Positions 3,001 to 52,800 of a stretch of 64,000 nucleotides of DNA are shown here, one piece after another; within the stretch, counting starts at the first letter, position 1, and every line of letters starts with the position of its first letter. Source of the DNA: Bugula neritina (lineage: Eukaryota; Animalia; Bryozoa); contig OZ037769.1 in NCBI GenBank assembly GCA_964035545.1, positions 17,514,633 to 17,578,632 on the forward strand, written 5' to 3'. Under the pieces are notes generated by a model. That model searched no databases. It was not told the DNA's origin and saw only the letters and a list, made by a program, of their open reading frames with translations. Made by a program: the position numbers and the translations under genes.

Positions 3001-6000
3001 AAGACGCAATTTTTGGTTCTACTATCTCCACCCTTCCCTACTTTATAATTAGCCTGTGTAATTGTTTTTTATGCTGCAGTCGACTGATTTATATTAACTT
3101 AAATTCTTGTATATCTAAGAGTATGACATACTTTTAACTTAGCTGTATTACAAATGTAGAAGGTTAGATTACTCCTAAGAACTTAATTCAAAATAAAAAC
3201 AAAATTGAATATAAGGAATAATGTCCCCAACCTGGAAGTCTCCAGTCAAAGGTGGCCTCCTTAGCTCTATCAACTTTGCGGCCAGGATGTGGAAAGTTAA
3301 AGGCTGTGATGGGTTTGAAGGATTTCTTTATACCATTGATGAGTTTCACGTCACTCTTAGGATCATTCAACTAAAATTGTTTTTTAATTTAGCTTGTCGG
3401 GTGTAAAGTTAAAATAATTAATTCAAATAGTAAAAGTAACATAGTGTAATGAATACCTAATAGTTAATCAAGCATTCAGCGTTGCGTTAGCATAACGTTT
3501 CACTCAAATAGGTTATCGCATTGCAATGACTGCTAGTTTTCAATTAATAAATTAAATAGTTAACCCATAGCAGCACGCCCTTGCCCATTGGTTGTGGGTT
3601 TACGCTTTGGCAGCACGGATGTTCGGTGCAGATGTTGAACTTACAGTTAGTAGAATAGTAGCGCTAGCAATGCAAGTTCCATCGCATCAATTACAATCAA
3701 TTTTAATATAATATAATTAATAAAATATAAATAAATTTGAAGAGGCGCAGGCTAGTTTTGTTTTTCAGTATTTGTCATATTTGAAGTTTTTGTGAAGTAT
3801 TTTTATCCATTTCAATTATAAGAATAAATATTTGGTTTATTTAACATGTTTAGGAGTTTAACTTTTTTGGAATGCCTGCGCGGTCAGTGCATGATAATAT
3901 TTATGGCTATGTGTATCTTTATAATAGGTTTCTCATAAAATTACTACTCTAAAGGCAGGCTCTCTAGTTATTGATCAGTTTGTCATGAGATAGAACCCTA
4001 ATTGGCAGTTTAAAGTTTTATTTTTACACAAAACAGTATTTTACTGCAACTACTAATTCAGGTCGACATTGAATATAAGTTTTAACCCCTGTCTATGGGC
4101 TATACATTCATTCTTACTAATTGCCTCAACATTTGTCTTATGGCAGTTATCACTTAATGTCATTTTTATTATAGTTTGATATTTTTTAGTAGACCTGTAA
4201 TACCGTTTCCTTGAGTCAAACTCACCCTAGCTAGCCACTAAAAGAAGGCAAGAGGTGATTAATTCAGAATTTGTATATATGTTTGAATACCTTGCAACTT
4301 CATAAATAATTTTTTGTTTGTTTTATTTTAAAAACTTGTTATAGTTACTTTTACAGTTTCTTACAGCAGTTGGAATAAATAAAAATAAAGTTACAAACGC
4401 CAACGCCAGTACAACTCATCTATATAGTTAGTGGCGGCGCTACATTGGGTAAAACTGAATTTCAGTAACCATTATTAAAATATTATTCAATAAAATTACT
4501 AACCAATTCATTAAAGATTCTGTCATCTTCTCCAAAAATTTCATCTTCGTTGTAGTTTCTTCTGATGAAAATCAAAGACCCAAACAAGCTATCTTCCTTA
4601 TCATCCAAATCATCAAATTCAACAGCTTTATCAACAGCTGAACAAAGCTACAAGTTGACACAATTAACTAGCACAGTTGCTACCAGTTCATAACTTACAC
4701 ATGGAGACATACAGTCACAGACATCTAGTAGAAATATTATGCTTAAATTCAATAATCCATGAAAACAGAAATAGTTGAAACAGAGAGATATATACTTGTA
4801 TGTGTACGTGTACGCGTATATATATATATATATATATACACGACTGTGAGATATAGTGCGCTGCTAAAAAGAGCTCAATGTTTAAAACAGAGCATATCAT
4901 GAAATAGAATTAAAATGTCACAGTTAAATTTGATAAAATATTTTATTACTAATAGTTTCATGCATATTAATTTGCATGAAACTATTAGTAATAAAATGTT
5001 TTGTCAAATTTAACTGTGACATTTTAATTCTACTGTGTGTGTGTGTGTGTGCGTGCGTGTGTGCGTGCGTGCGTGCGCGTGCGCGTGTGTGTGTGTGTTT
5101 GTGCTGTGTGCTGTGCGTGTGCTGTGTGTACGTATTATATTAGTATATATGTATTTTCCAATAGGTATTATATATAAGCAAAAAAAGATTATTTACAAAT
5201 AATTGTAATAATATGCTAAATATCTTCGGGTGTTCTCATATAGATTAATACCTGAAGCCTGGTAAGGTTTATCGGCTGAAGTAACTTGTCAATATTGAGA
5301 AGCTGTACAGATGCAATCTGCAGAGAAATGTAGGTCACTAGCTGGTCAATTCTCACATCACCTTTGATATGACCTTCACCTTCACAATCCATTATCAGAA
5401 TAGCCATCTGAAAAGATAGTAAGGGTATGTTACACTCACACTAGTGCATACCATATGCTGCACTACCATGAGTATTAGCCAACTGTGAAATTTGTGGTGA
5501 ATTGTAACCCAATAGACAGACCAGAGTGGCCACGTTTTATAATGAGCAATAGACTAGTGTAAAGTACTGGATTTTTTTAGATCAATTTCAGCTAGCTCTA
5601 TCTTGTATAGCTGCCTTTTGCCTTCTGTTATGTAATGGGTGAGTAATAAATTTGACTTCCCCCCTTTCACCTTTCTGCTACAGTCAAAGCTACTCTTGGT
5701 AAAATTTCTTTATAGACAGCACACAACAGAGCGTCATCCTTGAGTTACTACTACTACTGCACATAGCCAAGGTTCTTAAGCTGTTGTGCTCAGACAGGAG
5801 AAGACAACTATACAATAATGAAGAGAGATGATGAAGGAAATCTCTCACCAAACTAACTTACAGAACACAATATTCTATAGCTTATTAGTACAGTAGAACT
5901 ATGAGAACTGGGTGGTATGCAGTTAGTATACTTTGAGCTACTATAGTACCTTGTGTATACTGAGTAGTATATCATGCCACCTGCAAGGTGAGCTTCTTCC

Positions 6001-9000
6001 TATATAACCCTGGACACTATTGTACAGAATTTCTCAGCTGAAACCTTGGCGCACTTGGATAAACTTTTATTGTGTAATAAAATGTATTTCTCCTACACAC
6101 TGACCTTTTTTCCCTCTTCTGGTTCAACAATAAAAGGTTTGCTCCACACAGATATTCCTCTGGTTATGGTAGTTCTACTCTGTCCCCACGGGAATCCTTT
6201 AGTTTTTGTTGTTGAGTGTTCCCAATTATCATCATTATCATTCTGTGTAACCGAGAATAATTATATAACCAATACTGTATATAATACTGTATATTTACTA
6301 TAATATAATACTGTATATAATACTGTATATTTACTATAATATAATACTGTATATAATACTGTATATTTACTATAATATAATACTGTATATAATACTGTAT
6401 ATTTACTATAATATAATACTGTATATAATACTGTATATTTACTATAATATAATACTGTATATAATACTGTATATTTACTATAATATAATACTGTATATAA
6501 TACTGTATATTTACTATAATATAATACTGTATATAATACTGTATATAATACAGCATATTATACTGTATAATCAACTGCATTTTTACTATGCAATACTGTA
6601 TAATTATTGACAGAGAATAACTCACCAGCTCCAAGTAAGTTAAATAATTGATGTACAGATTGAGAAGGAAAGACTTTCCACTTCTAGCAACTCCAACCAT
6701 AGAGACAATGACCAGAGGCAAGTTACCAACTTTCTCAAGAACTTTGAGTAACTTCTTCTCTCTTATTTGAGGTTGACCTGACTCAAAGGTTACAATATCT
6801 ACGACTTTGTCCTTCTCTCCGAAGAATGATGTCACCTAATAAAAATTGATTGGATAAATTAATACTCTGCTATGGTTTAATAATAACTTTCGGTACATCT
6901 TGTCGTAAAATATTGGTAAGCAAATTTCTATCAGGTAAAATTTCTTTACCATGTCTATTAGTCTAAATTATTTGGTTTAGTGAGAGTTAATTAAGCTTTT
7001 TAAAACGCATCTGTGTCAATTATTCAACGTGACAAAATTAAACTCCTAAATATAGTCAATTGTCCATCAATATTTTCAGTGGTTTTATTATCTACATCAT
7101 TGCATATTACTTAAAATTATATTTTTAATTAAAATTGTTCATATTGCTATAGATGACTTTAATCAAAAGTGAATTAACTCTAGGGAAGACATTTGCTAGA
7201 AGCATATATAAGATAGTCACAGTATAAAATACACAAGTATAATGTTGTACCATCAATATGCCGGCTACTATAGCCCTTCCCTTTGATCTCAGTATAATAC
7301 TAAACATAGGTAAGAGGCATATGGGTAATTTAATCACATGTTAGTACACATTTGTTTCCTGATTGCCTCTACAAGCTTTTCTGATTACCCAAATTCACTG
7401 GAAAATACATCTGCGGATGAATCACATAAAATAACTGGGTTTGCCTGCATTCACAACTTTCATACCATACTAGACTACCTAGTGTACCTATACAATACTA
7501 TACTACCAAGTGTACCTATACAGTACTATACTACCAAGTGTACCTATACAGTACTATACTACCAAGTGTACCTATACAATACTATACTACCAAGTGTACC
7601 TATACAATACTATACTACCTAGTGTACCTATACAATACTATACTACCAAGTGTACCTATACAATACTATACTACCAAGTGTACCTATACAATACTATACT
7701 ACCTAGTGTACCTATACAATACTATACTACCTAGTGTACCTATACAATACTATACTACCTAGTGTACCTATACAATACTATACTACCTAGTGTACCTATA
7801 CAATACTATACTACCTAATGTACCTATACAATACTATACTACCAAGTGTACCTATACAGTACTATACTACCAAGTGTACCTATACAATACTATACTACCA
7901 AGTGTACCTATACAATACTATACTACCTAGTATACCTATACAATACTATACTACCAAGTGTACCTATACAATACTATACTACCAAGTGTACCTATACAAT
8001 ACTATACTACCTAGTGTACCTATACAGTACTATACTACCTAGTGTACCTATACAATACTATACTACCAAGTGCACCTATACAATACTATACTACCTAGTG
8101 TACCTATACAATACTATACTACCTAGTGTACCTATACAATACTATACTACCAAGTGTACCTATACAATACTATACTACCAAGTGTACCTATACAATACTA
8201 TACTACGTAGTGTACCTATACAATACTATACTACCAAGTGTATCTATACAATACTATACTACCTAGTGTACCTATACAATACTATACTACGTAGTGTACC
8301 TATACAATACTATACTACCAAGTGTACCTATACAATACTATACTACCTAGTGTACCTATACAATACTATACTACCAAGTGTACCTATACAATACTGTACT
8401 ACCAAGTGTACCTATACAATACTATACTACGTAGTGTACCTATACAATACTATACTACCAAGTGTATCTATACAATACTATACTACCTAGTGTACCTATA
8501 CAATACTATACTACGTAGTGTACCTATACAATACTATACTACCAAGTGTACCTATACAATACTATACTACCAAGTGTACCTATACAGTACTATACTACCT
8601 AGTGTACCTATACAATACTATACTACCTAGTGTACCTATACAATACTATACTACCTAGCAGGGTTGGGGTCAATTACATGTGAATGTAATTAATTACAAT
8701 TACAATTACATCAAAATTTCTCAATTACAATTATAATTTTACAGATAAAAAGTAATGTAATTAATTACAATTACAATTACATGGCAATGTATTTAATTAC
8801 AATTACAATTACTTTTGTTCTTACAAGCAATAAATAGAAGTTATGCAAGCTCCCTTATAGTGTCTAAATACCAGGGGCAATTTTGACAGGGGTGCATGAA
8901 CCTCCTTTGTTTTCAACAGTGATACTACACTACCTAGACCAGTGGTTCCCAACCTTTTTCATACTATTCCCCCTTTTCATAAATGTTGACTATTAATTAC

Positions 9001-27443: not shown

Positions 27444-28769
27444 CTGTCTGGTAACAGAGTTAGGCGATAATTAGCAATCAGTAACAAGACTTACTATTTA
27501 TTTTGAGTGAGTGCAATAAATATAATTATATTAACTTTCAATCAAGAGAATCCGACTAGCTCAAAGTCTACGCTAGAGTCAGGCTAAAAGTGATTCGTGA
27601 TCAGTAAGATTCATACTTAAAGTTATTGTTACTGTTAGACTTGCAGTTGTAGTTATACTATTAGGATTGCTTAGTCATAGTGATATTGATAATATTAGTA
27701 TTACTGCTACTCATAATCATAATGAAACAGATGATGAGGCCAACATAATATTAATATAAATATTGAGATTTTTTATCGTCTATTGCGGTCCTCTACTACT
27801 AGTACTAGTGCTAGCACTACTAACATAGTAATACTAATTACTAATACTAATAGTAATAGTAATACTAGAACTAAGAGCAATTCAGTATTTATTCAATCTA
27901 ATACTTCAAGTTTATCAAAAGGTATAAGCCTATCACTACAAATTGAAATATCAATTAGAATTATCATTATCATTATAATTAATATAATGAATCAAAAGAA
28001 TTAAGATTGACATTGATTATCATTATTCATTACTGATTATTATTGCGATAATAAGATTATCATTAGACATTACGATTATCATTATGATAAATCATTAAAT
28101 GGTTATCTTTAGCCTTTAGCCTTTAGGGCTAGGCTTAGCCTTAGGCTTATGTTATGACTATGAAGAAAATCAAAATGTATTAAGAATTTATTAATAAAAT
28201 ATTTTCTGATTCTATTTGAAAAAAATTATCTTTATACTAAAAAAATTTATGAGCCATAATGAGTCATAATGATTATTAAAACGATAATAACATATTATGA
28301 TACTATTTCATCAATTATTTATTTGTAATACTTAATCCAGACCGACGTGAATTTATAAGGCATGAGAATTGCTAGAAGCAGCATTGATTGGGAGTCATTG
28401 AGGGCAGTTTGTCTAGACGTGGTATAAAGAATTCAAACCTAACAACTAAAATCATTGCACTCAGTAACCATTAGTATTGTGTTCTTTCAAGCGATTTCCA
28501 TAAAGCACACGACCGTAGCCTTAGTGTTATTTTTCCATTCAGTGCAACAGCTATGTTTGTGCCGATGTATTGAGTAACAAATGAATACACAACTCCAGAA
28601 CTCATGTCATGGTCTGTTCAATTCACTTCAGTGCTGCGAGTGTATGTATGTATTACTTACAGTCAGATGTTATATTGGAAACCATATAATATTTGCAAGT
28701 AAATTGCATGTTTTATTAACTAAAAGCAATAAAACAGCATATATAACATCATTATCTATAAAGCTAATT

Positions 28770-30813
28770 CTAAAGTCCCTCGTCAAACACATCATCGTCA
28801 TAGGTCGTAGATATTTCAATATTCCCTTTACAATGTTGATATCTCTGGAAAGCCTCCAGTCGATCTCTGATCTCAGTTCTCTTCTTTCTCCTAGCCTCCA
28901 GCACCGACTCACAGGTCTCACTGTTGTCTTCGGGGATCGTCTCAGCCGCCCCGAGGTCAGACCCGCATGGCTGACCTTCACCTTTACCTGAGGCTACTCG
29001 CACCCCGTCGTCTCCACTCTCACCGGTAGCAAATGGCGTAGGCGCCGTGCCCACTCTATCGTCGTGGAAAGCGCTTGTTATCAGCTCATATTCGGCAGCC
29101 AGCAACTTCTGATTCATAAACTGATCTTCTCCTTGCAAGTCTTTCAAAGGTGAGACGGCGTCGTATACTGACCTCCTTTGTTCTGTCTCTTCTAGGACTG
29201 CGTTTCTCTGTACAACATAGTGATATACGCAGCTTCTTTAAACATATAACATATTATAGAAAGAAAACCTGTTTAATGAAGGTCATCGGCAAATACAACA
29301 CTTTCCTTCAACTGTGTATTATATTTTAGGGTTAGTAAAATAATTTAAACTTTGCTCTTAAATTATTTGTATTCTTATGAATATATATGCTAAGAGTTTA
29401 CAGGGTATGGTGTCTAATTACTAGTTTATAAGTTGAGATATGTTATAGTCAGTACTTTCGAACTATACACTGTAGTATGTATAGTATACACCGTAGTATG
29501 TATAGTATACACTGTAGTATGTGTAGTACACACTGTAGTATAGTACAGTATACACTGTAGTATGTGTAGTATACACTGTAGTATAGTATAGCACACTGTA
29601 GTATAGTATAGCACACTGTAGTATAGTAGAGCACACTGACCCAGCCCCCTGAGCTCACTATCCAGCTATGCATATGCTGACTGAGAAAGTGAGCTCCCAT
29701 CATCATCAGATCTGAACTTCTCTGTAAGTGTCCAGGTTTTCTGTTTCTGCTGACTCGGGAGACTAAGTCAGCAGTGAACTCCAGTACCTGAGTAACAAAT
29801 ACTTTATATAATACTCCAGTACCTGAGTAACAAATACTTTATATAATACTCCAGTACCTGAGTAACAAATACTTTATATAATACTCCAGTACCTGAGTAA
29901 CAAATACTTTATATAATACTCCAGGACCTGAGTAACAAATACTTTATATAATACTCCAGTACCTGAGTAACAAATACTTTATATAATACTCCAGTACCTG
30001 AGTAACAAATACTTTATATAATACTCCAGTACCTGAGTAATAAATACTTTATATAATAACTCCAGTACCCGAGTAACAAATACTTTATATAATACTCCAG
30101 TACCTGAGTAACAAATACTTTATATAATACTCCAGGACCTGAGTAACAAATACTTTATATAATACTCCAATACCTGAGTAATAAATACTTTATATAATAC
30201 TCCACGACCTGAGTAACCAATACTTTACTCACCATCACTACTCTGTCCCAGCTGATTTCCTCCCCACTGGGGATCAAGTAACTCAACAGGATTGTGTCAT
30301 AGTTGACCCGCGCCTTCCCTTCCCCAACTGAGGGGCTGATAATCATATCTATTTCGGACTTCCACACTTTGAAGACGTGATCATAGTGTTCGGCAATGAC
30401 ACACTTCAGAAAGTTACCTGCAAGCCATGAGTGCAAAGCCACACATGTTTTAGTGGAAATATAGCTAGTCTGCGTTAAGTTAGAGGAAATAGTCTGCGTT
30501 AGTTTAGAGGAAATAAATAGCTAGTCTACTTTTTAAGATTAGTAGTCTGTGTGATCAGAAGTTATCCATTCACGAGAAACTAATATTGGCAGTTCATTGC
30601 TTACAACATATTAGAGTTGCATTCTCTTACCAATCTTCTTTAGTTTCAAGATAGTTTGAGTTTTCTCACAACTGTCCTTTCCTAGCCCTAAACTCTCCAG
30701 GTGGGAGATGACACACGACAGCTTGCTCTCTATCTTATTACCCTCTTTTAAACTGAAAACAATGCAAGTTAGAGGTCAGTGCTGAAGTTGTGTAATATAT
30801 ATTACACAGGTAG

Positions 30814-30855
<42 letters not shown>

Positions 30856-33800
30856 CTACTTGTGTAACATATACTACTATCTGTGTAACATATATTACTA
30901 CCTGTGTAATATATATTACTACCTGTGTAATATATATGCCGAGAGAATGCCATGATGCTCAGCTCTCACTTTCTCATAGCGATGGTCCCGGGAAAGATGT
31001 CTAGAGTTGAACTTTTCAAATAGACATTCAGAAGTGTTGAGGCTGGAAGTGTTGGCGGGGGAGGCAGCAGCAGCCGGGGAGACAATTACGCTGTCGCTGC
31101 ATGAGTCAGCCGTACTGGACACAGGAATGTCAAACACTTCTTTGAACATCATCTTACTGACAGCACATTCAAAGGCTGCCTACAGGTACATATGTGGTAC
31201 TATATACTACAGGTACATATGTGGTACTATATACTACAGGTACATATGTGGTACTATATATTATAGGTATATATGATACTATATATTACAGGTATATATA
31301 ATACTACATATTGCAGGTATATATAATACTATATATTACAGGTATATATCATACTATGTAATACAGTTATATATATGATACTATATATTACCCAATCTCC
31401 ATTGTCGTGGATCCAACTGATAGCAAAACGTTCGATGAACTGGACACAAGCCGCCACCAAACTCGCTACTCGTTTACCACTCAGAATACTGAATTCATTA
31501 GCAGTTACCGTGTAGGTAATGAGTTCTTCAGTGTAGGAGATACTCTACAGAGAGTATATATATATGATATACTCTACAGAGAGTATATATATATGATATA
31601 CTCTACAGAGAGTATATATATGATACACTCTACAGAGAGTATATATATGATATACTCTACAGAGAGTATATATAGGGTATACTCTACAGAGAGTATATAT
31701 ATGATATACTGTATGCTAATAACTATTCAGTGTATGATATATTATGCAACTAGGTTACTAACTATACTCTAATGTTTATCTGTTACCGTGACAACCCTGT
31801 CCCAGCTCATCCTCTCCTTCCTGTCAGTCAACCAGTTCCTCAGGAGCTCCAGATATGCAGCCTTTATTCTGTTCTCTGAACACTTGCGGTTCGAGAGGAG
31901 CTCTTCTATTCTGTGTGTCTTTTCCCCCAACCGGATCACATTTGACTTGAAATATCGGGCTAAGATTGTCCCTGTAGAATATCATATTACTCTGTATTAC
32001 ATTACTCTGTATTATATTACTCTGTATCATATTACTCTGTATTATATTACTCTGTATCATATTACTCTGTATTATATTACTCTGTATTACATTACTCTGT
32101 ATTATATTACTCTGTATCATATTACTCTGTATTATATTACTCTGTATTATATTACTCTGTATTATATTACTCTGTATTATATACTCTGTATTGTATTACT
32201 CTGTATTATATTACTCTGTATTATATTACTCTGTATCATATTACTCTGTATTATATTACTCTGTATCATATTACTCTGTATTATATTTCTCTGTATCATA
32301 TTACTCTGTATTATATTACTCTGTATTATATTACTCTGTATTATATTACTCTGTATTATATTACTCTGTATCATATTACTCTGTATCATATTACTCTGTA
32401 TTATATATACTCTGTATTATATTACTCTGTATTATATTACTCTGTATTATATTACTCTGTATTATATATACTCTGTATTATATTACTCTGTATCATATTA
32501 CTCTGTATTATATTACTCTGTATTATATTACTCTGTATCGTATTACTCTGTATTATATTACTCTGTATCATATTACTCTGTATTATATTACTATGTATTA
32601 TATATACTCTGTATTATATTACTCTGTATTATATTACTCTGTATTATATTACTCTGTATTATATTACTCTGTATCATATTACTCTGTATCATATTGCTCT
32701 GTATTATATTACTCTGTATCATATTACTCTGTATCATATTACTCTGTATTATATTACTCTGTATTACATTACTCTGTATTATATTACTCTGTATTATATA
32801 TACTCTGTATTATATTACTCTGTATCATATTACTCTGTATTATATTACTCTGTATTATATTACTCTGTATCGTATTACTCTGTATTATATTACTCTGTAT
32901 CATATTACTCTGTATTATATTACTCTGTATTATATATACTCTGTATTATATTACTCTGTATTATATTACTCTGTATTATATTACTCTGTATTATATTACT
33001 CTGTATCATATTACTCTGTATCATATTGCTCTGTATTATATTACTCTGTATCATATTACTCTGTATCATATTACTCTGTATTATATTACTCTGTATTATA
33101 TTACTCTGTATCATATTACTCTGTATTATATTACTCTATATCATATTACTCTGTATTATATTACTCTGTATTATATTACCACTCACCATACTCTACGAGA
33201 GCTAGCATCAAGGGAGAGTTGTCATAGTTCGTCCTGTGCACTGGCAATACTTCACTCACTATTCTCTTCACCTGCACCGTATCGGCACTGCAATGACAAT
33301 CTACAGCTCATATACGTAATCTATAGAATACACTCTACTAAGTTAATTTATCTGCAGAATACACTCACAGGAGAGACAACTCCCTGTTATATATAGTAAC
33401 GGTGAGAGAGTAGTGACAACTCCCTGTTATATATAGTACCACTGAGAGAGTAGAGACAACTCCCTGTTATATATAATAACACTGAGAGAGTAGAGACAAC
33501 TCCCTGTTATATATAATAACACTGAGAGAGTAGTGACAACTCCCTGTTATATATAATAACACTGAGAGAGTAGTGACAACTCCCTGTTATATATAAGAAC
33601 ACTGAGAGAGTAGAGACAACTCCCTGTTATATATAATAACACTGAGAGAGTAGAGACAGCTAATAACACTGAGAGAGTGGAGACAACTCCCTGTTATATA
33701 TAATAACACTGAGAGAGTAGTGACAACTCCCTGTTATATATAGTAACACTGAGAGAGTAGAGACAACTCCCTGTTATATATAGTAACACTGAGAGAGTAG

Positions 33801-34257
33801 AGACAACTCCCTGTTATATATAATAACACTGAGAGAGTAGTGACAACTCCCTGTTATATATAGTAACACTGAGAGAGTGGAGACAACTCCCTGTTATATA
33901 TAATAACACTGAGAGAGTGGAGACAACTCCCTGTTATATATAATAACACTGAGAGAGTGGAGACAACTCCCTGTTATATATAATAACACTGAGAGAGTGG
34001 AGACAACTCCCTGTTATATATAATAACACTGAGAGAGTGGAGACAACTCCCTGTTATATATAATAACACTGAGAGAGTGGAGACAACTCCCTGTTATATA
34101 TAATAACACTGAGAGAGTAGAGACAGCTAATAACACTGAGAGATGTTTGATGATGTAACCATGACAACTGTTACTCAGCAAGAACGCATCTACACACACC
34201 TGCATCTGACGTAAGACCCGATGATGTCATATGTGTTGCTCTGTGTTGGTGACTCAT
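28770..34257 (-). CDS. BCL-2-family-like protein with two tandem BH domains, ~557 aa. Exons 34200-34257, 33369-33383 (putative microexon), 33187-33300, 31787-31971, 31392-31544, 30923-31179, 30631-30752, 30233-30417, 29641-29787, 28770-29207
   Basis: In-frame GT-AG model (1674 nt). Domain 1: LALVEYGTIL / MSWDRVVT / SWIHDNGDW. Domain 2: LKLKKIGNFL / ISWDRVVM / SWIVSSGGW. A phase-0 intron follows each BH2 Trp, as in BCL-2 family genes. The start codon is uncertain. Confidence 0.75.
29778..30226. repeat. 35-bp minisatellite made of acceptor site plus 10 nt of exon
   Basis: Minus-strand unit ATTATATAAAGTATTTGTTACTCAG|GTACTGGAGT, ~13 copies. Confidence 0.95.
31980..33178. repeat. Intronic minisatellite, 15-bp unit ATATTACTCTGTATT
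   Basis: Fills intron 31972-33186. Confidence 0.95.
33372..34141. repeat. Intronic minisatellite, 40-bp unit GAGACAACTCCCTGTTATATATAATAACACTGAGAGAGTA
   Basis: Roughly 19 copies; the unit contains the acceptor and start of the 33369-33383 microexon. Confidence 0.95.
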
Positions 34258-34477
34258 TTGAGGCAGCGCAAGACACCTGCTGACCCATGATTAGATCTTT
34301 TATTAATACTGACTGACTGACTGACTGACTGAAGTCTATCACTAGACTCAAATGTTTTCAACATTCCTCAAAGCCATAAACGTAATATTTGAAATATCTT
34401 ACATAACACAATATATTTTATATAATACTTTTAGTAATAATCAGCTGTTTGATAAACCATCCTATTTACAGCCTTTT

Positions 34478-34816
<339 letters not shown>

Positions 34817-36204
34817 TTATGTCAGTGCTAAAGCATATATTGTATGAAGCTCTGATATGTGCTAAAAGCATGTAGTCTCTAATAATATGCTGTTTCTGCA
34901 TCTCATAAACACAAGTTAATTGGAACAGGGCAGGAGAGTACAGACTGGAGTGAAATAATGTGCAGCATGTGGCATTCTGTAGCTACTTGATGGAGTATGC
35001 AGTGTGTTATATACTGTAGTATAATTATATATACTGTAGTATAATTATATATACTGTAGTATAATTATATTATATACTGCAGTATAATTACATATACTGT
35101 AGTATAATTATATATACTGTAGTATAATTACATATACTGTAGTATAATTATATATACTGTAGTATAATTATATTATATTATACTGTAGTATAATTATATA
35201 CTGTAGTATAGTATATATTATACAGAGCAGTATATCATGTATATTCATTCACGCTCCTGTATTGTAGTATAGACTTGTACGCTAGCACTTATGACTGTAT
35301 TTTGTTAGGGCACTAACCACAACACCCATTGGTTGAACGAGTTTGAACTGTGCTGAGGTTAGACTGAGCCTGGGACAGGTCAAAGGTCACATTCTTCACC
35401 TCGCTGAAATCAAGGCTACGGATTCAGCATTCATGACTCATTTACGCGGAGCAGACGGATGAGTTACAGCTGCAGACTGCTATAGCTACATGTTACTACA
35501 GCTACAGGCTACTACAGCTACATGTTACTACAGCTACAGGCTACTACAGCTACATGTTACTACAACTACAGGCTACTACAGGTATAACACTAGCTAATTA
35601 TTGTAGTAATGTGATTTTACATATGTACGTACATTTCTTCTCCAGTCTAATAGTAATAGTAATACGGTAGCTGATTTGAATAGCGAAAATATTACATTAG
35701 ACTTAGTAATACCAATGCTATTAGTATTACTATCAATATTACTATTATAGTACCTATTAACTATAGTGCTAGCCACTAGGTCTAGTGCTTGTATGCACAT
35801 TCTCATAGTTATACTGATAGTCACACTATACTCAGTACTCGCACACTGACTCTGTACTCTGTACTCACACACTGACACTGTACTCTGTACTCACACACTG
35901 TACTCTGTACTCACACACTGTACTCCGTACTCACACACTGTATTCAGTACTCACACACTCTACTCAGTACTCACACACTGTACTCTGTACTCACACACTG
36001 TACTCTGTACTCACACACTCTACTCAGTACTCACATGAAGATATTTCAAGAACTAGTGATCATTGGGATATAATGTGATATTTAATCATAATATAGTAAT
36101 TCTATTTACTTACTTATTTATATCATTATATCATATACCGATTATTTTAGAATATGTTCAATCCTTTTGCTCTATTACTTGCTTGGTGAAAACGCTATAG
36201 AGCT

Positions 36205-43800: not shown

Positions 43801-46800
43801 ACATTCTAGATGTGAATTCTTGTGTATAAAAGCAGGCGAGTTTCCAGTGTAGATTCAGACTACTACTGGAGCTCGCTGGTAGTAGGACCACATAGGCTGT
43901 ATCTGATGCAAATAAAGTTTATCTTTCATTCGTATTCAAATACTTGGCTTATTCTCTCTAACGCAAAGAGTATGTTCAAGCACTAGTTGCATTCATAACC
44001 CACAGTTTACTACATTGGTGGCAGCGGTGGGATTCTACGAATAGCTAGTTGCTAAGAGAAATAGGATGGCCCCAGGGGACCCAGCCCCTGAGGCAGCAGC
44101 ACCACCAGCCCTCACTATTGAGGCGCTGGTCACAGCCCTCCAGGGATTGCGGGGGCAAGGACAGGCAGCACCTGGTGACAGGTATCGCCTCCAGCCCCCG
44201 ACTTTCGGAGGAGATGGAGACGTGGAACAGTTCATCAAAGAGTTCGAGGACGTGGCCGCCACCGCTGAATGGCCAGTACGGGTGCGCGTCCTCCAACTCC
44301 GGGCCTGTCTGACAGGCCGGGCCAGGAACTTCGCACTGGGACCCGATGAAGCCCACATCCTGCGGGCTCTTAGGGCCCGGTTCGGGTTGACCACGGAAGA
44401 GGCGTCAGACCAGCTACAAGTGATGAGGAGAGACCGAAGGACATCTCTGGAAGATCACGCTAACGAGGTAGAGCGCCTGGCTCAGGCTGCTTTCGGTCAC
44501 GCCACTGGCGACGATCGGAAGCGCCTCGTTTTTAACGCGTTCTTCCGGAGTGTGAACCACCCGGACCTCCAGCGGTACTGGCTAGCCGCGAAAGTCAAGA
44601 GCCTGGACGAAGCACTAGAAATGGGGAAGGCCTACTTCCAGGTGGAAGAGCCACGGAGGGCGAACTACGCAGCTCGCCAGGTGGCCGGAGATGCAGAAGA
44701 GGTACCCCCAACCCCACAAGTGGCAGCAGCAGCTACCCCGTCGCCTGAGCAGACGCAGCTCAACATGCTGATGAGCATGATGAAAGGCCTGCAGGCTACG
44801 GTGACGGAGTTGCAGCGCAACCAGACGGACAGGCGGGCTCCCCGCTCGCGGGACGACCCTGTGCGCCCCCCTATGCCCACTTGCTGGGAGTGCGGGATGC
44901 CAGGACATGTGAGAAGGCACTGCCCTAAGGGACAGAAGCCTTTAAACACCCGAGGCTCACGGTGAATTCCGCCACCCGTGGGCCCCACGCCAATCCGGTC
45001 CGGGATAGGACTCGGAAGACAACAGAAGAGACCTCTCCAGAGTCGACCTACATCGAGTGGCACGCAAACCGGAGATCTCGGAGACCGAAAGGCCTACCCG
45101 ATCCTCCTGCCCTGCCACTCGATACCCGGATGGAACTAGAAGAAACCGGATGGCAGGCACCTCGGAGATCTCGGAGACCGCAAGGTCTACCCGATCCTCC
45201 AGCCTGGCCACTCCGTAACCGGTTCGCGGGGTTGCCCGAGGAGGTTGTGGAGGAGGATTCAGCTTACTCGCAAGAGTATTCCAAGCTACCCTCCCGACCT
45301 CAGAAAACCCCCGTTGTCTCTAAGACGAAGAGGAGGCCCGCTGTGCGGACCCAAGTTGTGTCTCCCCCAGAGACTGACCGCTCCAGGAGCACCCAGCCGT
45401 ATGGAAGCAGCTACTTCCTGCCCGGAAAGATTTCGGGTAAAGCTGCCACATTCCTACTGGATACTGGGTGCACTACCAACCTGCTGAGTAGGCGTCTCTT
45501 TGATACCCTTGGTGCACGAGAGCGGGCGAGCCTCGAGCCGTATGAAGGTGCGCATGGTACGTTGGCGGACGGATCATGCATTCCTTTCTACGGCGTCATT
45601 TCACTACCTGGACGCGTCCGTGATCAAGCAGTTCACGAGACGTTCATAGTCAGCCAGCTGAAGGAGGACGCCATCTTGGGAATGCCCTTCCTGGAGAAAC
45701 ACCAGTGTCACATGGATTTCCAGAAGTCAGTGGTGGTGATGGCTGGGAAGGAACTTGTCTGTGTTGACAAGTTTGGCAGGCCCTTGGTGGGCGGAGTCCA
45801 GGTAGTGCGGGACTGCACAGTTCCGGGGAGGTCCCAGGCGACTCTCCGATGCAGAGTCAACTGCAAGGAGATCGCCGGCCTGGGGATGGTTGAAGGAACG
45901 CACGGAGCCATCCGACTAGCAAACAGCCTGAATCGGCTAGATTGTCGGCAAGAGCTCCTCGTGCAGTGCATCAACCCCTTCACGGAACCTGTCCAATTAT
46001 CGGCTGGAGCGCTGGTGGGGAAGTACCACTCCATCCAGGAAGCGGATGTGGGTCCGGCACTGGAGACAGTGGCCGACAACCAGGGAAACCCCCCTCACAC
46101 CAGACGAGAAGCAGTCCCGGAGCATCTGGCTGACCTGTATGGCGGAGCATGCGGAAACTGTACGAGTAGTACTGAACGCCAAGTACTGGCTCAACTACTC
46201 GCGGAGTACAGTGATGTCTTCAGTCGTGGCGATGGAGACATGGGGCTGACTAAGGTTATCTCCCACGAGATACCCCTGGCAGCCGACACCACTCCCATCA
46301 GGCAGCCTACCCGACGTCTGGGCCCGGAGAAGGAGAAGGAGGTGAGCCGACAGGTACAGGATCTTCTGGACCGGGATCTGATTGAGCCTGCCCACGGTGC
46401 GTGGAGCTCCCCAGTGGTCCTGGTCAAGAAGAAGGATGGTAGCTGGAGATTCTGCGTGGACTACCGCAGACTCAACAACGCTACCATCCAGGACGCCTAC
46501 CCTCTCCCCCGGATAGATGAGTCTCTAGACGCCCTCGCGGGTAGCAAGTACTTCAGTACTTTGGATCTGCTTAGTGGGTACTGGCAAGTGCCCCTCAGCC
46601 CTGATGCACAGGACAAAGCAGCATTCATTACTCGCGACGGGCTCTGGAAATGGAAAGTACTGCCATTCGGACTGACGTCCGCTCCGGCAACATTCCAACG
46701 ACTCATGGAGCAAGTCCTCAGTGGGTTACACTGGAAGACCCTCCTCATCTATCTGGACGACGTCATTGTCATCTCCCCAGACTTCTCGACTCATGTCAGC

Positions 46801-49800
46801 CGTCTGCGGGAGGTCTTTGACCGTCTCCGGGCTGCTGGACTGAAGCTGAAGCCCTCCAAGTGTGCACTCCTGCAGCCAGAAGTCACGTACCTGGGCCATG
46901 TGGTTGGCCGTGATGGGGTCGCTACCGATCCAGAGAAGGTACAAGCTGTGAAGGAGTGGACTGTCCCCCGTGACCTCCCTGAGTTGCGTGCTTTCCTGGG
47001 CCTAGTAGGGTACTACCGGCAGTACATACCTAGGTTCGCAGGAGTGGCTCAACCGTTAAATCGGTTGACCGCAAAGGGAGTCCGGTGGCAGTGGACACAG
47101 GAGGAGCAACAGGCATTCGACCACCTCAAGCAACGGCTAATGGAAGCGCCAATCCTGGCGTATCCTGATCCAGCCAAGGAGTACATCCTGGACACCGATG
47201 CCAGCGACCACAGCGTGGGAGCCGTCTTGTCTCAAGTCCAGGGTGGAAGTGAGGTGGTCGTGGCTTACTATAGCAAGACTCTCGCGGCCGCCGAGAAGAA
47301 CTACTGCACCACTAGGAAGGAACTCCTAGCAGTAGTCAAGGCGGTCAAGCACTTTCGGCCATATCTGTATGGGAAATCGTTCCGTCTGCGAACAGACCAT
47401 GCATCACTGATATGGCTGTGTAAACGTGCAGAGCCCTCGAGCCAGGTGGCTCGTTGGCTAGAGATTCTTGCTGAGTTCTCTTACCGGATAGAGCACCGTG
47501 CAGGCCGGAAGCATGGGAACGCCGACGGCATGAGCCGCCGGCCGGTAGAGGACTGTAAGCAATGCCTACACATTGAACAGCGGGACGGGGGACCCGCTCG
47601 CCTTGACGTGGAAGCAGGACTAGTGGAGGGCACCACCTACCAGTGGGAGCACGGCCATCTTCGGACCGAAACCCACCAGGACGGTGTCCAGGCACTCCAC
47701 GCCAACCCTACTCTGCACCAGAACGTCAAGGAGCTGTGCCGACTCCAGGAGACGCTACCCGGCGCGGTAGCGGACATCTTCCGGGCCAAGAAGGAGGGCC
47801 GACGGCCTAGCGAGGAACAGCAGCGACAGGGGGACGTTGAGTTCCAACTCCTCTGTCGTCGCTGGGATGCCCTCAAGGTCAGTCCCGATGGCCTCCTGAT
47901 GATAACGTTAGCAGCAGACAACCGCCAGCAGAAGAGGGACCGCGTCGTCTGTCCACGCGCCCTCCGGCGGGAACTGATCTGGGACACCCATAAGCAGGCT
48001 CATGCTGGAGTCAGTCGGGTCATCAGGTGTCTGCGGCTACGTTGGTATTGGCCCGGAATGACTCGGGACGTACGACTGCGGGTACGGCAATGCGAGGTCT
48101 GCCAAGCTAGCAAGCATGGCCGCCCCACGGAAACCACTGGTCGACGCCGGCTGTACGCTGGTCGACCGTGGCAAGTAGTGGCGGTAGACCTCGTCGGGCC
48201 TATGCCGTTATCCGCCAGAGGGAACACCTGGATACTGGTGCTCACGGACCACTTTACCCGGTGGGCGGATGCTCTGGCTATTCCAGACGCCACCGCCCCC
48301 ACGGTGGCCCGGACCCTGGACCAACATGTATTCTGTTACCTCGGTTTGCCCGAGCAGATACATACAGACCAGGGTGCCCAGTTCCAGTCCCAGCTCATGG
48401 GAGACCTCTGCCGGATATGGGGGGTGAACCAGAGTCGGACCACCCCATATCACCCGCAAGGGAACGGAGTCGTCGAGCGGAACAACAGGATGTTGGGTGA
48501 CGCGCTCCGGAGCCTGCTGCTTGGTCGAGGTCAGGAAGAATGGGACGTGGTGCTGCCGCAGATCATGCGGGCTTACCGCAGCACACCACACTCCGCCACG
48601 CAGGAGACCCCAAACTTCCTGATGTTAGGCCGAGAGACGCGGGTCCCGGAACACCTGACGTACCATGTTCCTGCCCCCGAGTCACCGGTACACGAATATG
48701 TGGAGGGTCTGATGGACATCATGGGCAAAGCTCATGATGCGCTGCGCACCCAGCAGTGGCAGACCCGCACAGAGGACTCGGAGGAGCCCCCGTTGTACCA
48801 AGTGGGAGACTGGGTCTGGATGGTGAGTTACCGTAGGCGGCGCGGACAGTCGGCTAAGCTTCAGCCCAAGTTCGTCGGCCCCTACTGCGTAGTAGAGGTG
48901 CTGCCCAACCACACATACCGTGTGGAGCGCTCTGGACAGGTCTCTGTCCAGAGCGAGCAGCGCCTCAAACCTTACCATGCCAGCCCAGACGCGGTGGGTC
49001 AGGCTCCACCCCTCTTGGAGCCCCACCGTCAGCCCAACCGTCGTGGACGGGCCACCCAGCCCCGTGAGGTGGAGATTATGGTCCCCAGGGAGGCGGACCA
49101 GGAGCAGGCCGCCTTGATAGAGCAGCTGGAGCGACAGCAGAGAGAAGAGCGGGAACAGGAACAGCGGCAAGCCCTAGGACCACCACCCTCCCTGGGGGAG
49201 GACACCCCCACCCCCGTGTTGGGTGAAGGCGGGGACCCCCCTACTAGGGTAGCACAGGAGCCACCAACACCACCGGTGCCTGTTCCAATTGAGAGGAGCC
49301 AGCGGTCAAGAAGACCCCCTAGGTATCTGGCAGACTATGCTGTAGGGCACCTGGAGTGGCCCCCTCATGAAGACAACCCACTCAGTACGGACGACCACCC
49401 CATCTTGGCTGGAAATTCCCTCCATCACCCCGGAGAATTCCACCAAGAAGAAGATTTCACACAGCTAGCACGTGAGTTACAGCTCAAGTTGAATTGTAAT
49501 CCTGATACCCCTAAGTATAATTTAAACACTGTTATTCAGACACTAGCATCAGCTATGGGAGTTACCTCGCCAGATACCCAAACAGAGGAGCGTAAGGATA
49601 CTGAGGAGGCCAGTCGATCCGACTCCCCTCCCCCACCAGCTCCTGTTTCGGCTCCCCGCAGCCAGCAGTACGACACCCCCTCTTCCGAGGTGTGTTCCGC
49701 CAGCGTTAGTGGCCCTGACCCCGAACCGGTTGAGCTCCAGCTCACAGCTGGGGAAGAGCAGGGCACTCTATACGGCGACCACCTCGCAGGCAGAGACGAA

Positions 49801-52800
49801 GAGGATCCTCCAATACTGGCAATGCCTCGGGCCCTGGTCGCCCGCCAGTATTGGATATCTGGAGCACCAGGCAACCAGATAGAAGAACAGACTCAGCCAA
49901 CCCACCCACAATTGCCTCGTCACGGGCAGAGTATGGCACTTCCTTACCGAGAGTGCGTCCTGGATAGCGCAATCGAGGCCTGGTCCCATATCCTCGATCC
50001 AAGTACAGAAGAGATAGAAAGCCTGGTGCACCACCTCTAATGATAAAACCGGACAACCAGGGGCCGCTGGCAATAGCCAACTGAACTGTAAATGTTCTCG
50101 TGTTACGTGTGATTAATCATAATACTGTCCTGTTAACCGCATATTTTTCTACGTTTGTGTTTCATTTTTTTGTGTGGAATCATTGTTTTGTTATCGAAAA
50201 GGGGATGCTTTTCGATGGGGGGAGAATGTGATAGATTCTCATCCTCTACTGTTTTCAAGTAACTGCGTGTGTCAGTATTATAATGACTGTTGCGTATATT
50301 TTGAATGCTGTAATTGTAGCTAAGTTGCACTAGCTTTCTAATGCCTTATTATTGTGATTAAGCTTTCAGTATAATGTAATTTTCATTAAATACGCATTTC
50401 CAGAGTTATTTTCTCTTTTTGCTATTTCATCGTTTTGCATTAATACTGATACTGGAAATTTGTGTAGCTTTTATGAATGCCTTCAATAGGTTGTTATTAT
50501 AGCTAAACTCTTGGCCTATTGAATTATTCATTCTCCTTTGTCTATTTTTCTTTTGTTACTGTCAAGCTTAACTTTCTTTTGTCTGTTGGAACATTCTAGA
50601 TGTGAATTCTTGTGTATAAAAGCAGGCGAGTTTCCAGTGTAGATTCAGACTACTACTGGAGCTCGCTGGTAGTAGGACCACATAGGCTGTATCTGATGCA
50701 AATAAAGTTTATCTTTCATTCGTATTCAAATACTTGGCTTATTCTCTCTAACGCAAAGAGTATGTTCAAGCACTAGTTGCATTCATAACCCACAGTTTAC
50801 TACAGTATATAGTGTATAGTACTCAGTTATAGAGTAGATTATATAGTATATAGTATATAGAGTATATAGTATATAGTGTATAGTACTCAGTTATAGAGTA
50901 GATTATATAGTATATAGAGTATATAGTATATGGTACTCAGTTACAGAGTATATAGTATATAGTACTCAGTTATAGAGTATATAGTATATAGTACTCAGTT
51001 ATAGAGTATATAGTATATAGTACTCAGTTATAGAGTATATAGTATATAGTACTCAGTTATAGAGTAGAGTATATAGTATATAGTACTCAGTTATAGAGTA
51101 GAGTATATAGTATATAGTACTCAGTTATAGAGTAGAGTATATAGTATATAGTACTCAGTTATAGAGTAGAGTATATAGTATATAGTACTCAGTTATAGAG
51201 TAGAGTATATAGTATATAGTACTCAGTTATAGAGTAGAGTATATAGTATATAGTACTCAGTTAAAAGGCAGAGTAGTGCAACTACATGTAGGTGTTGTCA
51301 AATTGACAGAATAGAAAACTTACCCGATTCAACGAGAAACATGAGAAGACAACGGCAAGGTCAGAGGTCAAGGTCAGCCGGTAGACTGCCATCTTCTGCA
51401 ATAAGCAAGATGACTAACTTTTTCATGGAGGAGGCAGATTATGGAGCGAGTCGTCGAGTGGTTAACTTGGAATCTGACGAAGATGTTGAGGTTGGTTGTA
51501 GGCAGGAGAGGTGGTTGTAAGCAGAAGAGGTGGTTGTAAGTAGAAGAGGTGGTTGTAAGTAGAAGAGGTGGTTGTAAGCAGAAGAGAGTCTTGTGAAGTG
51601 AGTTAGTGTAGGTTCAAGAATAAGCCGCTGTTCAGACCATAAGAATAGAGTATGAGACTAACTACTGTTCTCTATTCTCTACCACACTAGTATGTTCTCT
51701 ATTCTCTACCACACTAATATGTTCTCTATTCTCTACCACACTAATATGTTCTCTATTCTCTACCACACTAGTATGTTCTCTATTCTCTACCACACTAATA
51801 TGTTCTCTATTCTCTACCACACTAGTATGTTCTCTATTCTCTACCACACTAATCTGTTCTCTATTCTCTACCACACTAATCTGTTCTCTATTCTCTACCA
51901 CACTAGTCTGTTCTCTATTCTCTACCACACTAGTATGTTCTCTATTCTCTACCATACTAATATGTTCTCTATTCTCTACCACACTAGTCTGTTCTCTATT
52001 CTCTACCACACTAATATGTTCTCTATTCTCTACCACACTAGTATGTTCTCTATTCTCTACCACACTAGTCTGTTCTCTATTCTCTACCACACTAATATGT
52101 TCTCTATTCTCTACCACACTAGTATGTTCTCTATTCTCTACCACACTAGTATGTTCTCTATTCTCTACCACACTAGTACGTTCTCTATTCTCTACCATAC
52201 TAGTCTGTTCTCTATTCTCTACCACACTAGTATGTTCTCTATTCTCTACCACACTAATATGTTCTCTATTCTCTACCACACTAATATGTTCTCTATTCTC
52301 TACCACACTAATATGTTCTCTATTCTCTACCACACTAGTCTGTTCTCTATTCTCTACCACACTAGTATGTTCTCTATTCTCTACCACACTAGTATGTTCT
52401 CTATTCTCTACCACACTAGTCTGTTCTCTATTCTCTACCACACTAGTATGTTCTCTATTCTCTACCACACTAATCTGTTCTCTATTCTCTACCACACTAA
52501 TCTGTTCTCTATTCTCTACCACACTAGTCTGTTCTCTATTCTCTACCACACTAGTATGTTCTCTATTCTCTACCACACTAGTATGTTCTCTATTCTCTAC
52601 CACACTAATATGTTCTCTATTCTCTACCACACTGGTATGTTTTATATTCCATATTTTATTCTGTTGTAGAGTTTAGTTTCTGAGCAGTTTGTACACAGCC
52701 AACATTGTGAAGTTTCTACTCGCATGCCAAAGAGCAGTGCACTTCCTGTCAGAACCTCGGCAACCAATCAGAGAAAAGAAGGAAAGAGCAGATCAGAATC

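Follow-up and report, generated by a model that had tools for sequence, protein, structure and literature searches.

The question raised by a 64-kb stretch of DNA from the bryozoan Bugula neritina (assembly GCA_964035545.1, contig OZ037769.1, here C5, positions 17,514,633 to 17,578,632) is whether a single gene can encode two BCL-2 domains in one chain. BCL-2 proteins act by pairing, and this pairing sets the threshold for cell death; to our knowledge, every characterised member of the family carries one BCL-2 domain per chain. A first-pass annotation of the whole 64-kb stretch, hereafter the window, had proposed one protein with two tandem BCL-2 folds. All coordinates given below without a contig name are positions in the window. 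We consider it likely that the locus constitutes a single expressed gene whose product is a soluble protein of ~558 residues, comprising two diverged BCL-2 homology domains (each from helix 1 to helix 8), a disordered linker of ~33 residues and an acidic tail of ~130 residues. A paralogue of this gene was found on contig C8 by a six-frame Pfam scan of the assembly followed by local tblastn.

One spliced gene on the minus strand

Exon-by-exon translation yielded nine exons with GT-AG splice sites (E1 to E9, Table 1), which extend from 34288 to 28770 on the minus strand and join into a single open frame of 1677 nt, corresponding to 558 codons and a stop. The exon sizes, end motifs and intron phases that had been noted for the repeated part all proved correct on direct reading, and the exon plan of E3 and E4 is repeated in E7 and E8. 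The start codon was placed differently. The ATG at 34257, which had been taken as the start, is out of frame with E2 under the strong donor and can avoid a stop in E2 only with a weak donor; we chose the ATG at 34288 instead. This codon has an A at -3 and a G at +4, the donor of the exon is CAG/GTGTGT, and the N-terminus read from it has homologues in the paralogue and at the start of domain 2. This N-terminus begins M-G-Q-Q-V-S-C, in agreement with the N-myristoylation pattern M-G-x-x-x-S in the C5 copy.

E2 represents the segment from helix 1 to helix 2 of domain 1 and is weakly collinear with exon 2 of the paralogue, while E6 is its counterpart in domain 2. Within E3 lies a stretch resembling the BCL-2 homology (BH) motif BH3, V-I-R-L-G-E-K, and the exon ends with the BH1-like S-W-D-R-V-V-T. 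E4 covers the latter half of helix 5, helix 6 and helix 7 and terminates with the BH2 motif W-I-H-D-N-G-D-W. The following exon, E5, connects the halves: it opens with a helix-8-like start of the domain 1 tail, continues with ~33 residues rich in Ser, Ala and Pro and closes with a helix that carries the helix-1-like G-I-L-S-A-Y-I-L-H of domain 2. When E5 was modelled alone with AlphaFold, a helix, a coil of ~33 residues and a second helix were predicted, at low confidence throughout. The acceptor of E8 at 29787 was picked by register with exon 8 of the paralogue, to which E8 is 42% identical. For E9 alone, structure prediction gave a helix, a disordered acidic middle, a second helix at a predicted local distance difference test score (pLDDT) of 82-85 and an acidic end; neither the sequence nor the predicted structure of E9 contained a hydrophobic tail anchor.

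Table 1. Features of the tandem BCL-2 gene in the window, and related loci elsewhere in the assembly.
Feature	Position	Strand	Description
E1	34200..34288	minus	29 codons + 2 nt, phase 2 out; predicted; homologous to paralogue exon 1
E2	33187..33287	minus	101 nt, phase 2 in, phase 1 out within Gly codon; predicted
E3	31787..31971	minus	185 nt, domain 1, phase 0 out; 3' splice joint in RNA
E4	31392..31544	minus	153 nt, domain 1, phase 0 out; both splice joints in RNA
E5	30923..31179	minus	257 nt, fusion/linker exon, phase 2 out; both joints in RNA, frame open
E6	30631..30752	minus	122 nt, phase 2 in, phase 1 out within Gly codon; both joints in RNA
E7	30233..30417	minus	185 nt, domain 2, BH1-like end S-W-D-R-V-V-M, phase 0 out; 5' joint in RNA
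E8	29641..29787	minus	147 nt, domain 2, BH2 end W-I-V-S-S-G-G-W, phase 0 out; predicted
E9	28770..29207	minus	145 codons + stop; predicted
AATAAA polyadenylation signal	28712..28717	minus	53 nt past stop codon; predicted from sequence
Intron array, 40-mer x19	33372-34125		
Intron array, 15-mer x80	31980-33179		
Intron arrays, 27-mer x6; 25-mer x8			
Intron arrays, 21-mer x4 + (AT)19; 21-mer x7.7			
Intron array, 35-mer x12.8	29778-30227		
Paralogous tandem BCL-2 gene (L016 + L021)	G000:C8:10786000-10801000	minus	same order, phases and nine-exon two-domain layout
Head-to-tail BCL-2-like gene pair (L015)	G000:C3:19921000-19930999	minus	units ~2 kb apart

An intron-less contig of 667 nt from a public run labelled as metagenomic RNA-seq joins E3, E4, E5, E6 and E7 at the predicted sites with zero indels (joints 30417/30631, 30752/30923, 31179/31392 and 31544/31787). 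At all four joints the skipped sequence is bounded by CT..AC when read on the plus strand and hence by GT..AG in the direction of the gene. RNA and DNA runs were compared over 30228-31975, an interval spanning the join of the two halves, and no such joints were present there in a DNA run of the same species, which covers the introns. In a search of the organism's own 216-Mb assembly each 185-nt exon occupied one locus (E3 and E7 each matched itself only), which makes a processed retrocopy unlikely. As the contig is spliced across E3 to E7 in frame, a single mRNA carries both halves; a common reading frame and transcript across the join, as the first-pass annotation had claimed, are thus borne out by four exact joints.

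The RNA contig differs from the window at ~3.6% of positions. Among the 15 differences listed, which fall in 14 codons, 10 codons are synonymous and 4 change the amino acid; all four replacements are located in the linker exon E5, none in E4 or E6. Over E9 a comparison was possible with a DNA contig of a sibling lineage (L026), which is 94.0% identical to the window and has no indels, while the intron beside E9 shows 89.9% identity and 35 gap bases. Of the codons that differ between the two copies of E9, 14 are synonymous and 9 are replacements, and 16 of the 26 base changes fall on third codon positions. These patterns indicate that the reading frame is under purifying selection. Along 27946-29469 this DNA lineage, taken from a public run, is 88-94% identical to the assembly, and the RNA contig reaches ~96%; a deep haplotype or a cryptic sibling species may account for this divergence.

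Relation of the two halves to the BCL-2 family

The two halves were compared exon by exon. E3 matches E7 with a BLASTP E-value of 7e-7, in register and ungapped, and E4 aligns with E8 end to end at 1e-4. Shuffle z-scores ranged from 4.4 to 24 over all domain pairs, and the halves are ~20-29% identical to each other. Of the C5 exons, the Pfam Bcl-2 profile PF00452 matches E8 alone (E-value 1.7e-4, 22.5 bits, profile positions 56-100); in the paralogue it matches the BH2 exons of domain 1 (E4', 1.8e-4) and domain 2 (E8', 1e-4). With a joint profile of E4 and E8, the PDB matches listed were BCL-2 family chains only (E-value 7e-4), and the same was found with a profile of all four BH2 exons, for which the matches listed included human BCL-2 (best E-value 1.3e-4).

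Canonical single-exon BCL-2 genes of the same genome (L001 and L002) served as reference for hhalign. An open reading frame with 100% identity to the assembly's canonical BCL-2 gene is also present in the Logan runs SRR4020082-84 and in a JGI metagenome with contig names that include AY690838, the accession of the B. neritina mitochondrial genome. The BH1-exon profile was placed, weakly though in register, on canonical residues 56-111, ending on W-G-R-I-V-G (P 0.009; score 18.9 against a maximum of 17.3 in 200 column shuffles), and the BH2-exon profile on residues 112-158, ending on G-G-W (P 1e-5; score 32.5 against a maximum of 19.6 in 200 column shuffles). The two placements adjoin each other with zero gap and zero overlap. 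When the domains were tested separately against the canonical genes, 3 of 4 tests passed. The gene structure is in line with these alignments. A phase-0 intron directly after the second BH2 Trp is a hallmark of BCL-2 family genes, and such an intron follows this residue immediately in both domains, confirmed for domain 1 by the RNA joint 31392/31179; in L001 and L002, too, an exon ends at this point. The position of the post-BH1 intron is likewise shared, to the residue, with canonical-like genes of the same genome. From these sequence comparisons we conclude that each half represents a diverged BCL-2 homology domain, with stronger evidence for domain 2 than for domain 1. The earlier view that the two units share ancestry with one another and with the BCL-2 family is upheld by the exon BLASTP, the PF00452 matches, the PDB profile matches and hhalign.

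Compared with human BCL-2, BCL-xL, L001 and L002, the features in common are the BH2 motif, the segment from helix 5 to helix 7, the W-x-R of BH1, the phase-0 intron after the BH2 Trp, the helix-1 motif and a collinear map from BH3 to BH2. The C5 protein departs from canonical members in having two domains per chain and a long acidic tail, and in lacking the BH1 Gly and a C-terminal anchor. In place of the Gly of the canonical N-W-G-R, both domains of the C5 gene have Asp and those of the paralogue Glu and Gln, whereas the Trp, the Arg and two aliphatic residues of BH1 are kept in all four domains. In the family, the BH3-binding groove is lined by these two BH1 residues, Gly and Arg; BCL-2 and BCL-xL no longer bind their partners once the Gly is changed.

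The position of BH3 needed revision in part. The first-pass annotation placed a phase-1 intron in the BH3 Gly; the phase-1 intron in a Gly codon is real in both halves, but the residue that it interrupts is probably a glycine other than that of BH3. Counted back from the BH1 Trp, the junction Gly lies at a distance of 55 residues, compared with 42-45 for the canonical BH3 Gly, so that the stretch is ~10-13 residues longer, and hhalign puts the canonical BH3 on residues 8-19 of E3, i.e. on V-I-R-L-G-E-K, 14 residues past the junction Gly. In domain 2 of the C5 gene BH3 is degenerate and shows no convincing motif.

Several observations weigh against one expressed gene with two BCL-2 homology domains. 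E1, E2, E8 and E9 lie outside the RNA contig and have no RNA support, and the contig, being ~96% identical to the window, comes from another lineage or haplotype and from a run that is merely labelled RNA. Scores of single exons (22-23 bits) stay below the Pfam gathering cut-off of 31.4 bits, in a domain that is split by an intron. E4 alone found no Pfam match and no PDB match, the profile of the four BH1 exons found no PDB match, and the domain-1 BH1 exons alone were not significant against the canonical BCL-2 genes. N-myristoylation as a conserved family trait had to be discarded, since the paralogue begins with M-P-R-R.

The silence of E4 and of the domain-1 BH1 exons would be expected if domain 2 alone were a working BCL-2 fold and domain 1 a decayed copy now serving as a helical spacer or as some other kind of domain, and the BH2 exon scores between the paralogues (115 for domain 2, 60 for domain 1) point the same way. 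We nevertheless regard a decayed domain 1 as improbable, although no other alternative holds up as well. The domain-1 BH2 exon of the paralogue is one of those matching PF00452, the domain-1 BH2 exon pair gives P 0.0017 against the canonical genes, and in E4 none of the differences listed against the sibling transcript changes an amino acid. Domain 1 also keeps the W-x-R of BH1, its BH2 W-I-H-D-N-G-D-W is nearest to the canonical motif, and it has the best BH3-like motif. Its BH1 exons are linked to domain 2 by the match of E3 to E7.

Single-exon searches with the 185-nt exons returned little. Neither E3 nor E7 gave a usable match in the PDB, and E7 gave none in the ESM Atlas. Against 1.84 billion protein representatives, E7 retrieved two bacterial surface proteins only, which we rejected as spurious because their Ig-like/FG-GAP repeats sum weak matches. 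The absence of a true relative of E7 in this library is weak evidence, as exon-sized products of intron-rich animal DNA are sparse there. The idea that a helical protein with a different fold has converged on BCL-2 at the level of motifs, to which these empty searches and the lack of any exon at the Pfam cut-off would lend some colour, is very improbable in view of the 3 of 4 BH2 exons that match PF00452 on the same segment (55-100), the listed PDB profile matches that are all BCL-2 family chains, the gap-free and overlap-free map of the exon pair onto the canonical domain, the family-typical phase-0 intron past the BH2 Trp and the shared residue of the post-BH1 intron.

Paralogue and origin of the tandem layout

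The exons of the paralogue are arranged on one strand in the order and with the phases of the C5 gene. Its first exon has the phase-2 split at the end, and exon 2 ends in phase 1 within a Gly codon. Domain 1 consists of a 185-nt exon ending T-W-E-R-L-L-V and a 147-nt exon ending G-G-W. The linker exon shares the motifs F-D-I-P and I-S-A-Y-V-R with E5 and is open in the same phases; it is followed by a short sixth exon that again ends in phase 1 within a Gly codon, and the intron behind it apparently uses a GC donor (GCAAGT). Domain 2 is composed of a 185-nt exon ending S-W-Q-R-I-I-M and a 156-nt exon ending W-I-Q-S-S-G-G-W. Family profiles match just the C5 and C8 genes in the assembly. Summed scores of BH1 and BH2 exons were 119 for domain 1 against domain 1 of the paralogue and 172 for domain 2 against domain 2, while cross pairs scored 94-103. 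Because domains of the same position score highest with each other, the tandem layout predates the split of the C5 and C8 genes.

Some further features were noted at the C8 locus. Two introns of the paralogue contain copies of a tRNA-like short interspersed element (about L016 7460-7580 and 5290-5480), and the C-terminal exon is apparently very short. A protein-kinase-like gene is located on the opposite strand ~1.4 kb downstream of the last BCL-2 exon.

With regard to the origin of the two domains, the first-pass annotation had assumed an internal duplication of an exon cassette. The repeated unit turned out to be larger. E1 and E5 have similar ends (D-I-I-G-S-Y-V-R-C and G-I-L-S-A-Y-I-L-H), as do exons 1 and 5 of the paralogue (D-L-I-S-A-Y-V-R-T and D-V-I-S-A-Y-V-R-E). 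All four of these helix-1-like ends are cut by a phase-2 intron one codon further on and resemble the helix-1 motif of canonical genes. E2 and E6 have the phase pattern in common (2 in, 1 out), and both E5 and E9 open with a helix-8-like stretch just past the BH2 Trp. The repeated helix-1 motif, the phases of E2 and E6 and the helix-8-like starts indicate that the duplicated unit is the whole domain, from helix 1 to helix 8. In E5, the end of one gene seems to be followed by the beginning of another.

An unfused arrangement is present in the same genome. On contig C3 two canonical-looking BCL-2-like units follow each other head to tail, each with a terminal exon that carries a hydrophobic tail anchor and a stop (about 8124-8255 and 5796-5933 of the locus). 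Owing to these anchor exons and stops, one per unit, the locus was rejected as a second tandem-domain gene. It resembles the C5 gene in having two BCL-2-like units on one strand, an intron after BH2 and another after BH1 that falls at the same residue; in contrast to the C5 gene it consists of two anchored genes that have kept the BH1 Gly (N-W-G-K, T-W-G-R). An unfused pair of the C3 type is likely the starting state. We prefer the fusion of two neighbouring duplicated genes over the duplication of an internal cassette and infer the following course. Two adjacent, tandem-duplicated BCL-2-like genes would have fused, the upstream gene losing its membrane-anchor end and the downstream gene its start, which left the chimeric E5; the fused gene may later have been duplicated as a whole to give the C5 and C8 copies.

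The pair on C3 also lends some plausibility to the view that the C5 locus itself holds two separate neighbouring BCL-2-like genes and that the joined RNA contig, a single low-depth product of short-read assembly, is a read-through or an assembly chimera. We hold this to be highly unlikely, as the contig is in frame and spliced at four canonical sites, no stop codon, start codon or exon for a membrane anchor lies between the halves, and E5, which shows an excess of synonymous changes, has a counterpart in the C8 paralogue that is open in the same phases. The reading of one gene with two domains is thus retained.

Beyond these loci, the six-frame Pfam Bcl-2 scan of the whole assembly returned at least 24 matches, many of them isolated BH2-type exons (profile 55-100) on C3, C4, C6 and C8. 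Judged by these matches, the BCL-2-like family of this assembly looks expanded and diverse.

The window surrounding the C5 gene consists of AT-rich animal DNA with many repeats. Between 29464 and 34125 nearly all introns of the gene are made up largely of tandem arrays (Table 1). Each copy of the 35-mer has AG/GT-like sites, and the acceptor of E8 lies within the last copy. An imperfect (CA)n array of ~340 nt (34479-34817) lies ~190 nt upstream of the start codon. At 44066-50040 on the plus strand, a 6-kb block with ~60% G+C stands out from surroundings with 35% G+C. It is a Ty3/Gypsy-type retroelement with an open gag-like reading frame of 299 amino acids and an open pol reading frame of 1692 amino acids that contains protease, reverse transcriptase, RNase H and integrase. 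Ribosomal or foreign DNA had been considered for this GC-rich block at 44-50 kb and was dismissed in favour of the retroelement, as no Rfam match was found there.

The predicted protein and its place in the family

A role as membrane pore former or as a classic groove-type guardian is unlikely for the C5 protein because it has no tail anchor and all four domains have another residue in place of the BH1 Gly. The hydrophobic C-terminal anchor that marks tail-anchored proteins of the BCL-2, BCL-xL, BAK and BOK type is missing from E9. The most likely role would be that of a two-headed binder, cytosolic or peripherally attached; in the C5 copy only, the N-terminal M-G-x-x-x-S could provide a lipid anchor. 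The two helical bundles may pack as an intramolecular pseudo-heterodimer, and by holding BH3-bearing or other partners they could tune cell death or stress signalling.

A more specific model can be formulated, which we consider doubtful at present. According to this model the protein would be a natural, covalent BCL-2 pseudo-heterodimer. Its bundles would be packed together, with the altered groove of domain 2 receiving the BH3-like helix of domain 1, and the protein would alternate between this closed state and a two-handed open state. As a soluble protein it would regulate cell death or immunity without an anchor, so far in the bryozoan lineage only.

Among known proteins, BCL2L13 (BCL-rambo) is likewise much longer than one BCL-2 domain. 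It has one BCL-2 domain with a non-homologous extension and an anchor, whereas the C5 protein has a second BCL-2 domain and no anchor. Two bundles side by side, as a covalent tandem could mimic, occur in the BH3-in-groove dimers of BAX and BAK, in domain-swapped BCL-xL and in dimeric poxvirus BCL-2-like proteins. These non-covalent dimers are formed by separate associating chains, whereas the halves of the C5 protein are linked genetically. A full-text literature search for exact phrases in ~8.4 million papers found no description of natural proteins with two or tandem BCL-2 domains, with automatic database annotations of other invertebrates outside its scope, and nothing was found in the literature search on a bryozoan BCL-2 family.

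The C5 gene is a real, expressed and new domain architecture within the known BCL-2 family. It illustrates how a new architecture can arise by fusion of tandem duplicates while the unfused state persists elsewhere in the same genome. With two diverged BCL-2 domains hard-wired to each other, the anchor lost and the BH1 glycine changed in all copies, it represents a ready-made experiment on a fixed BCL-2 pair.

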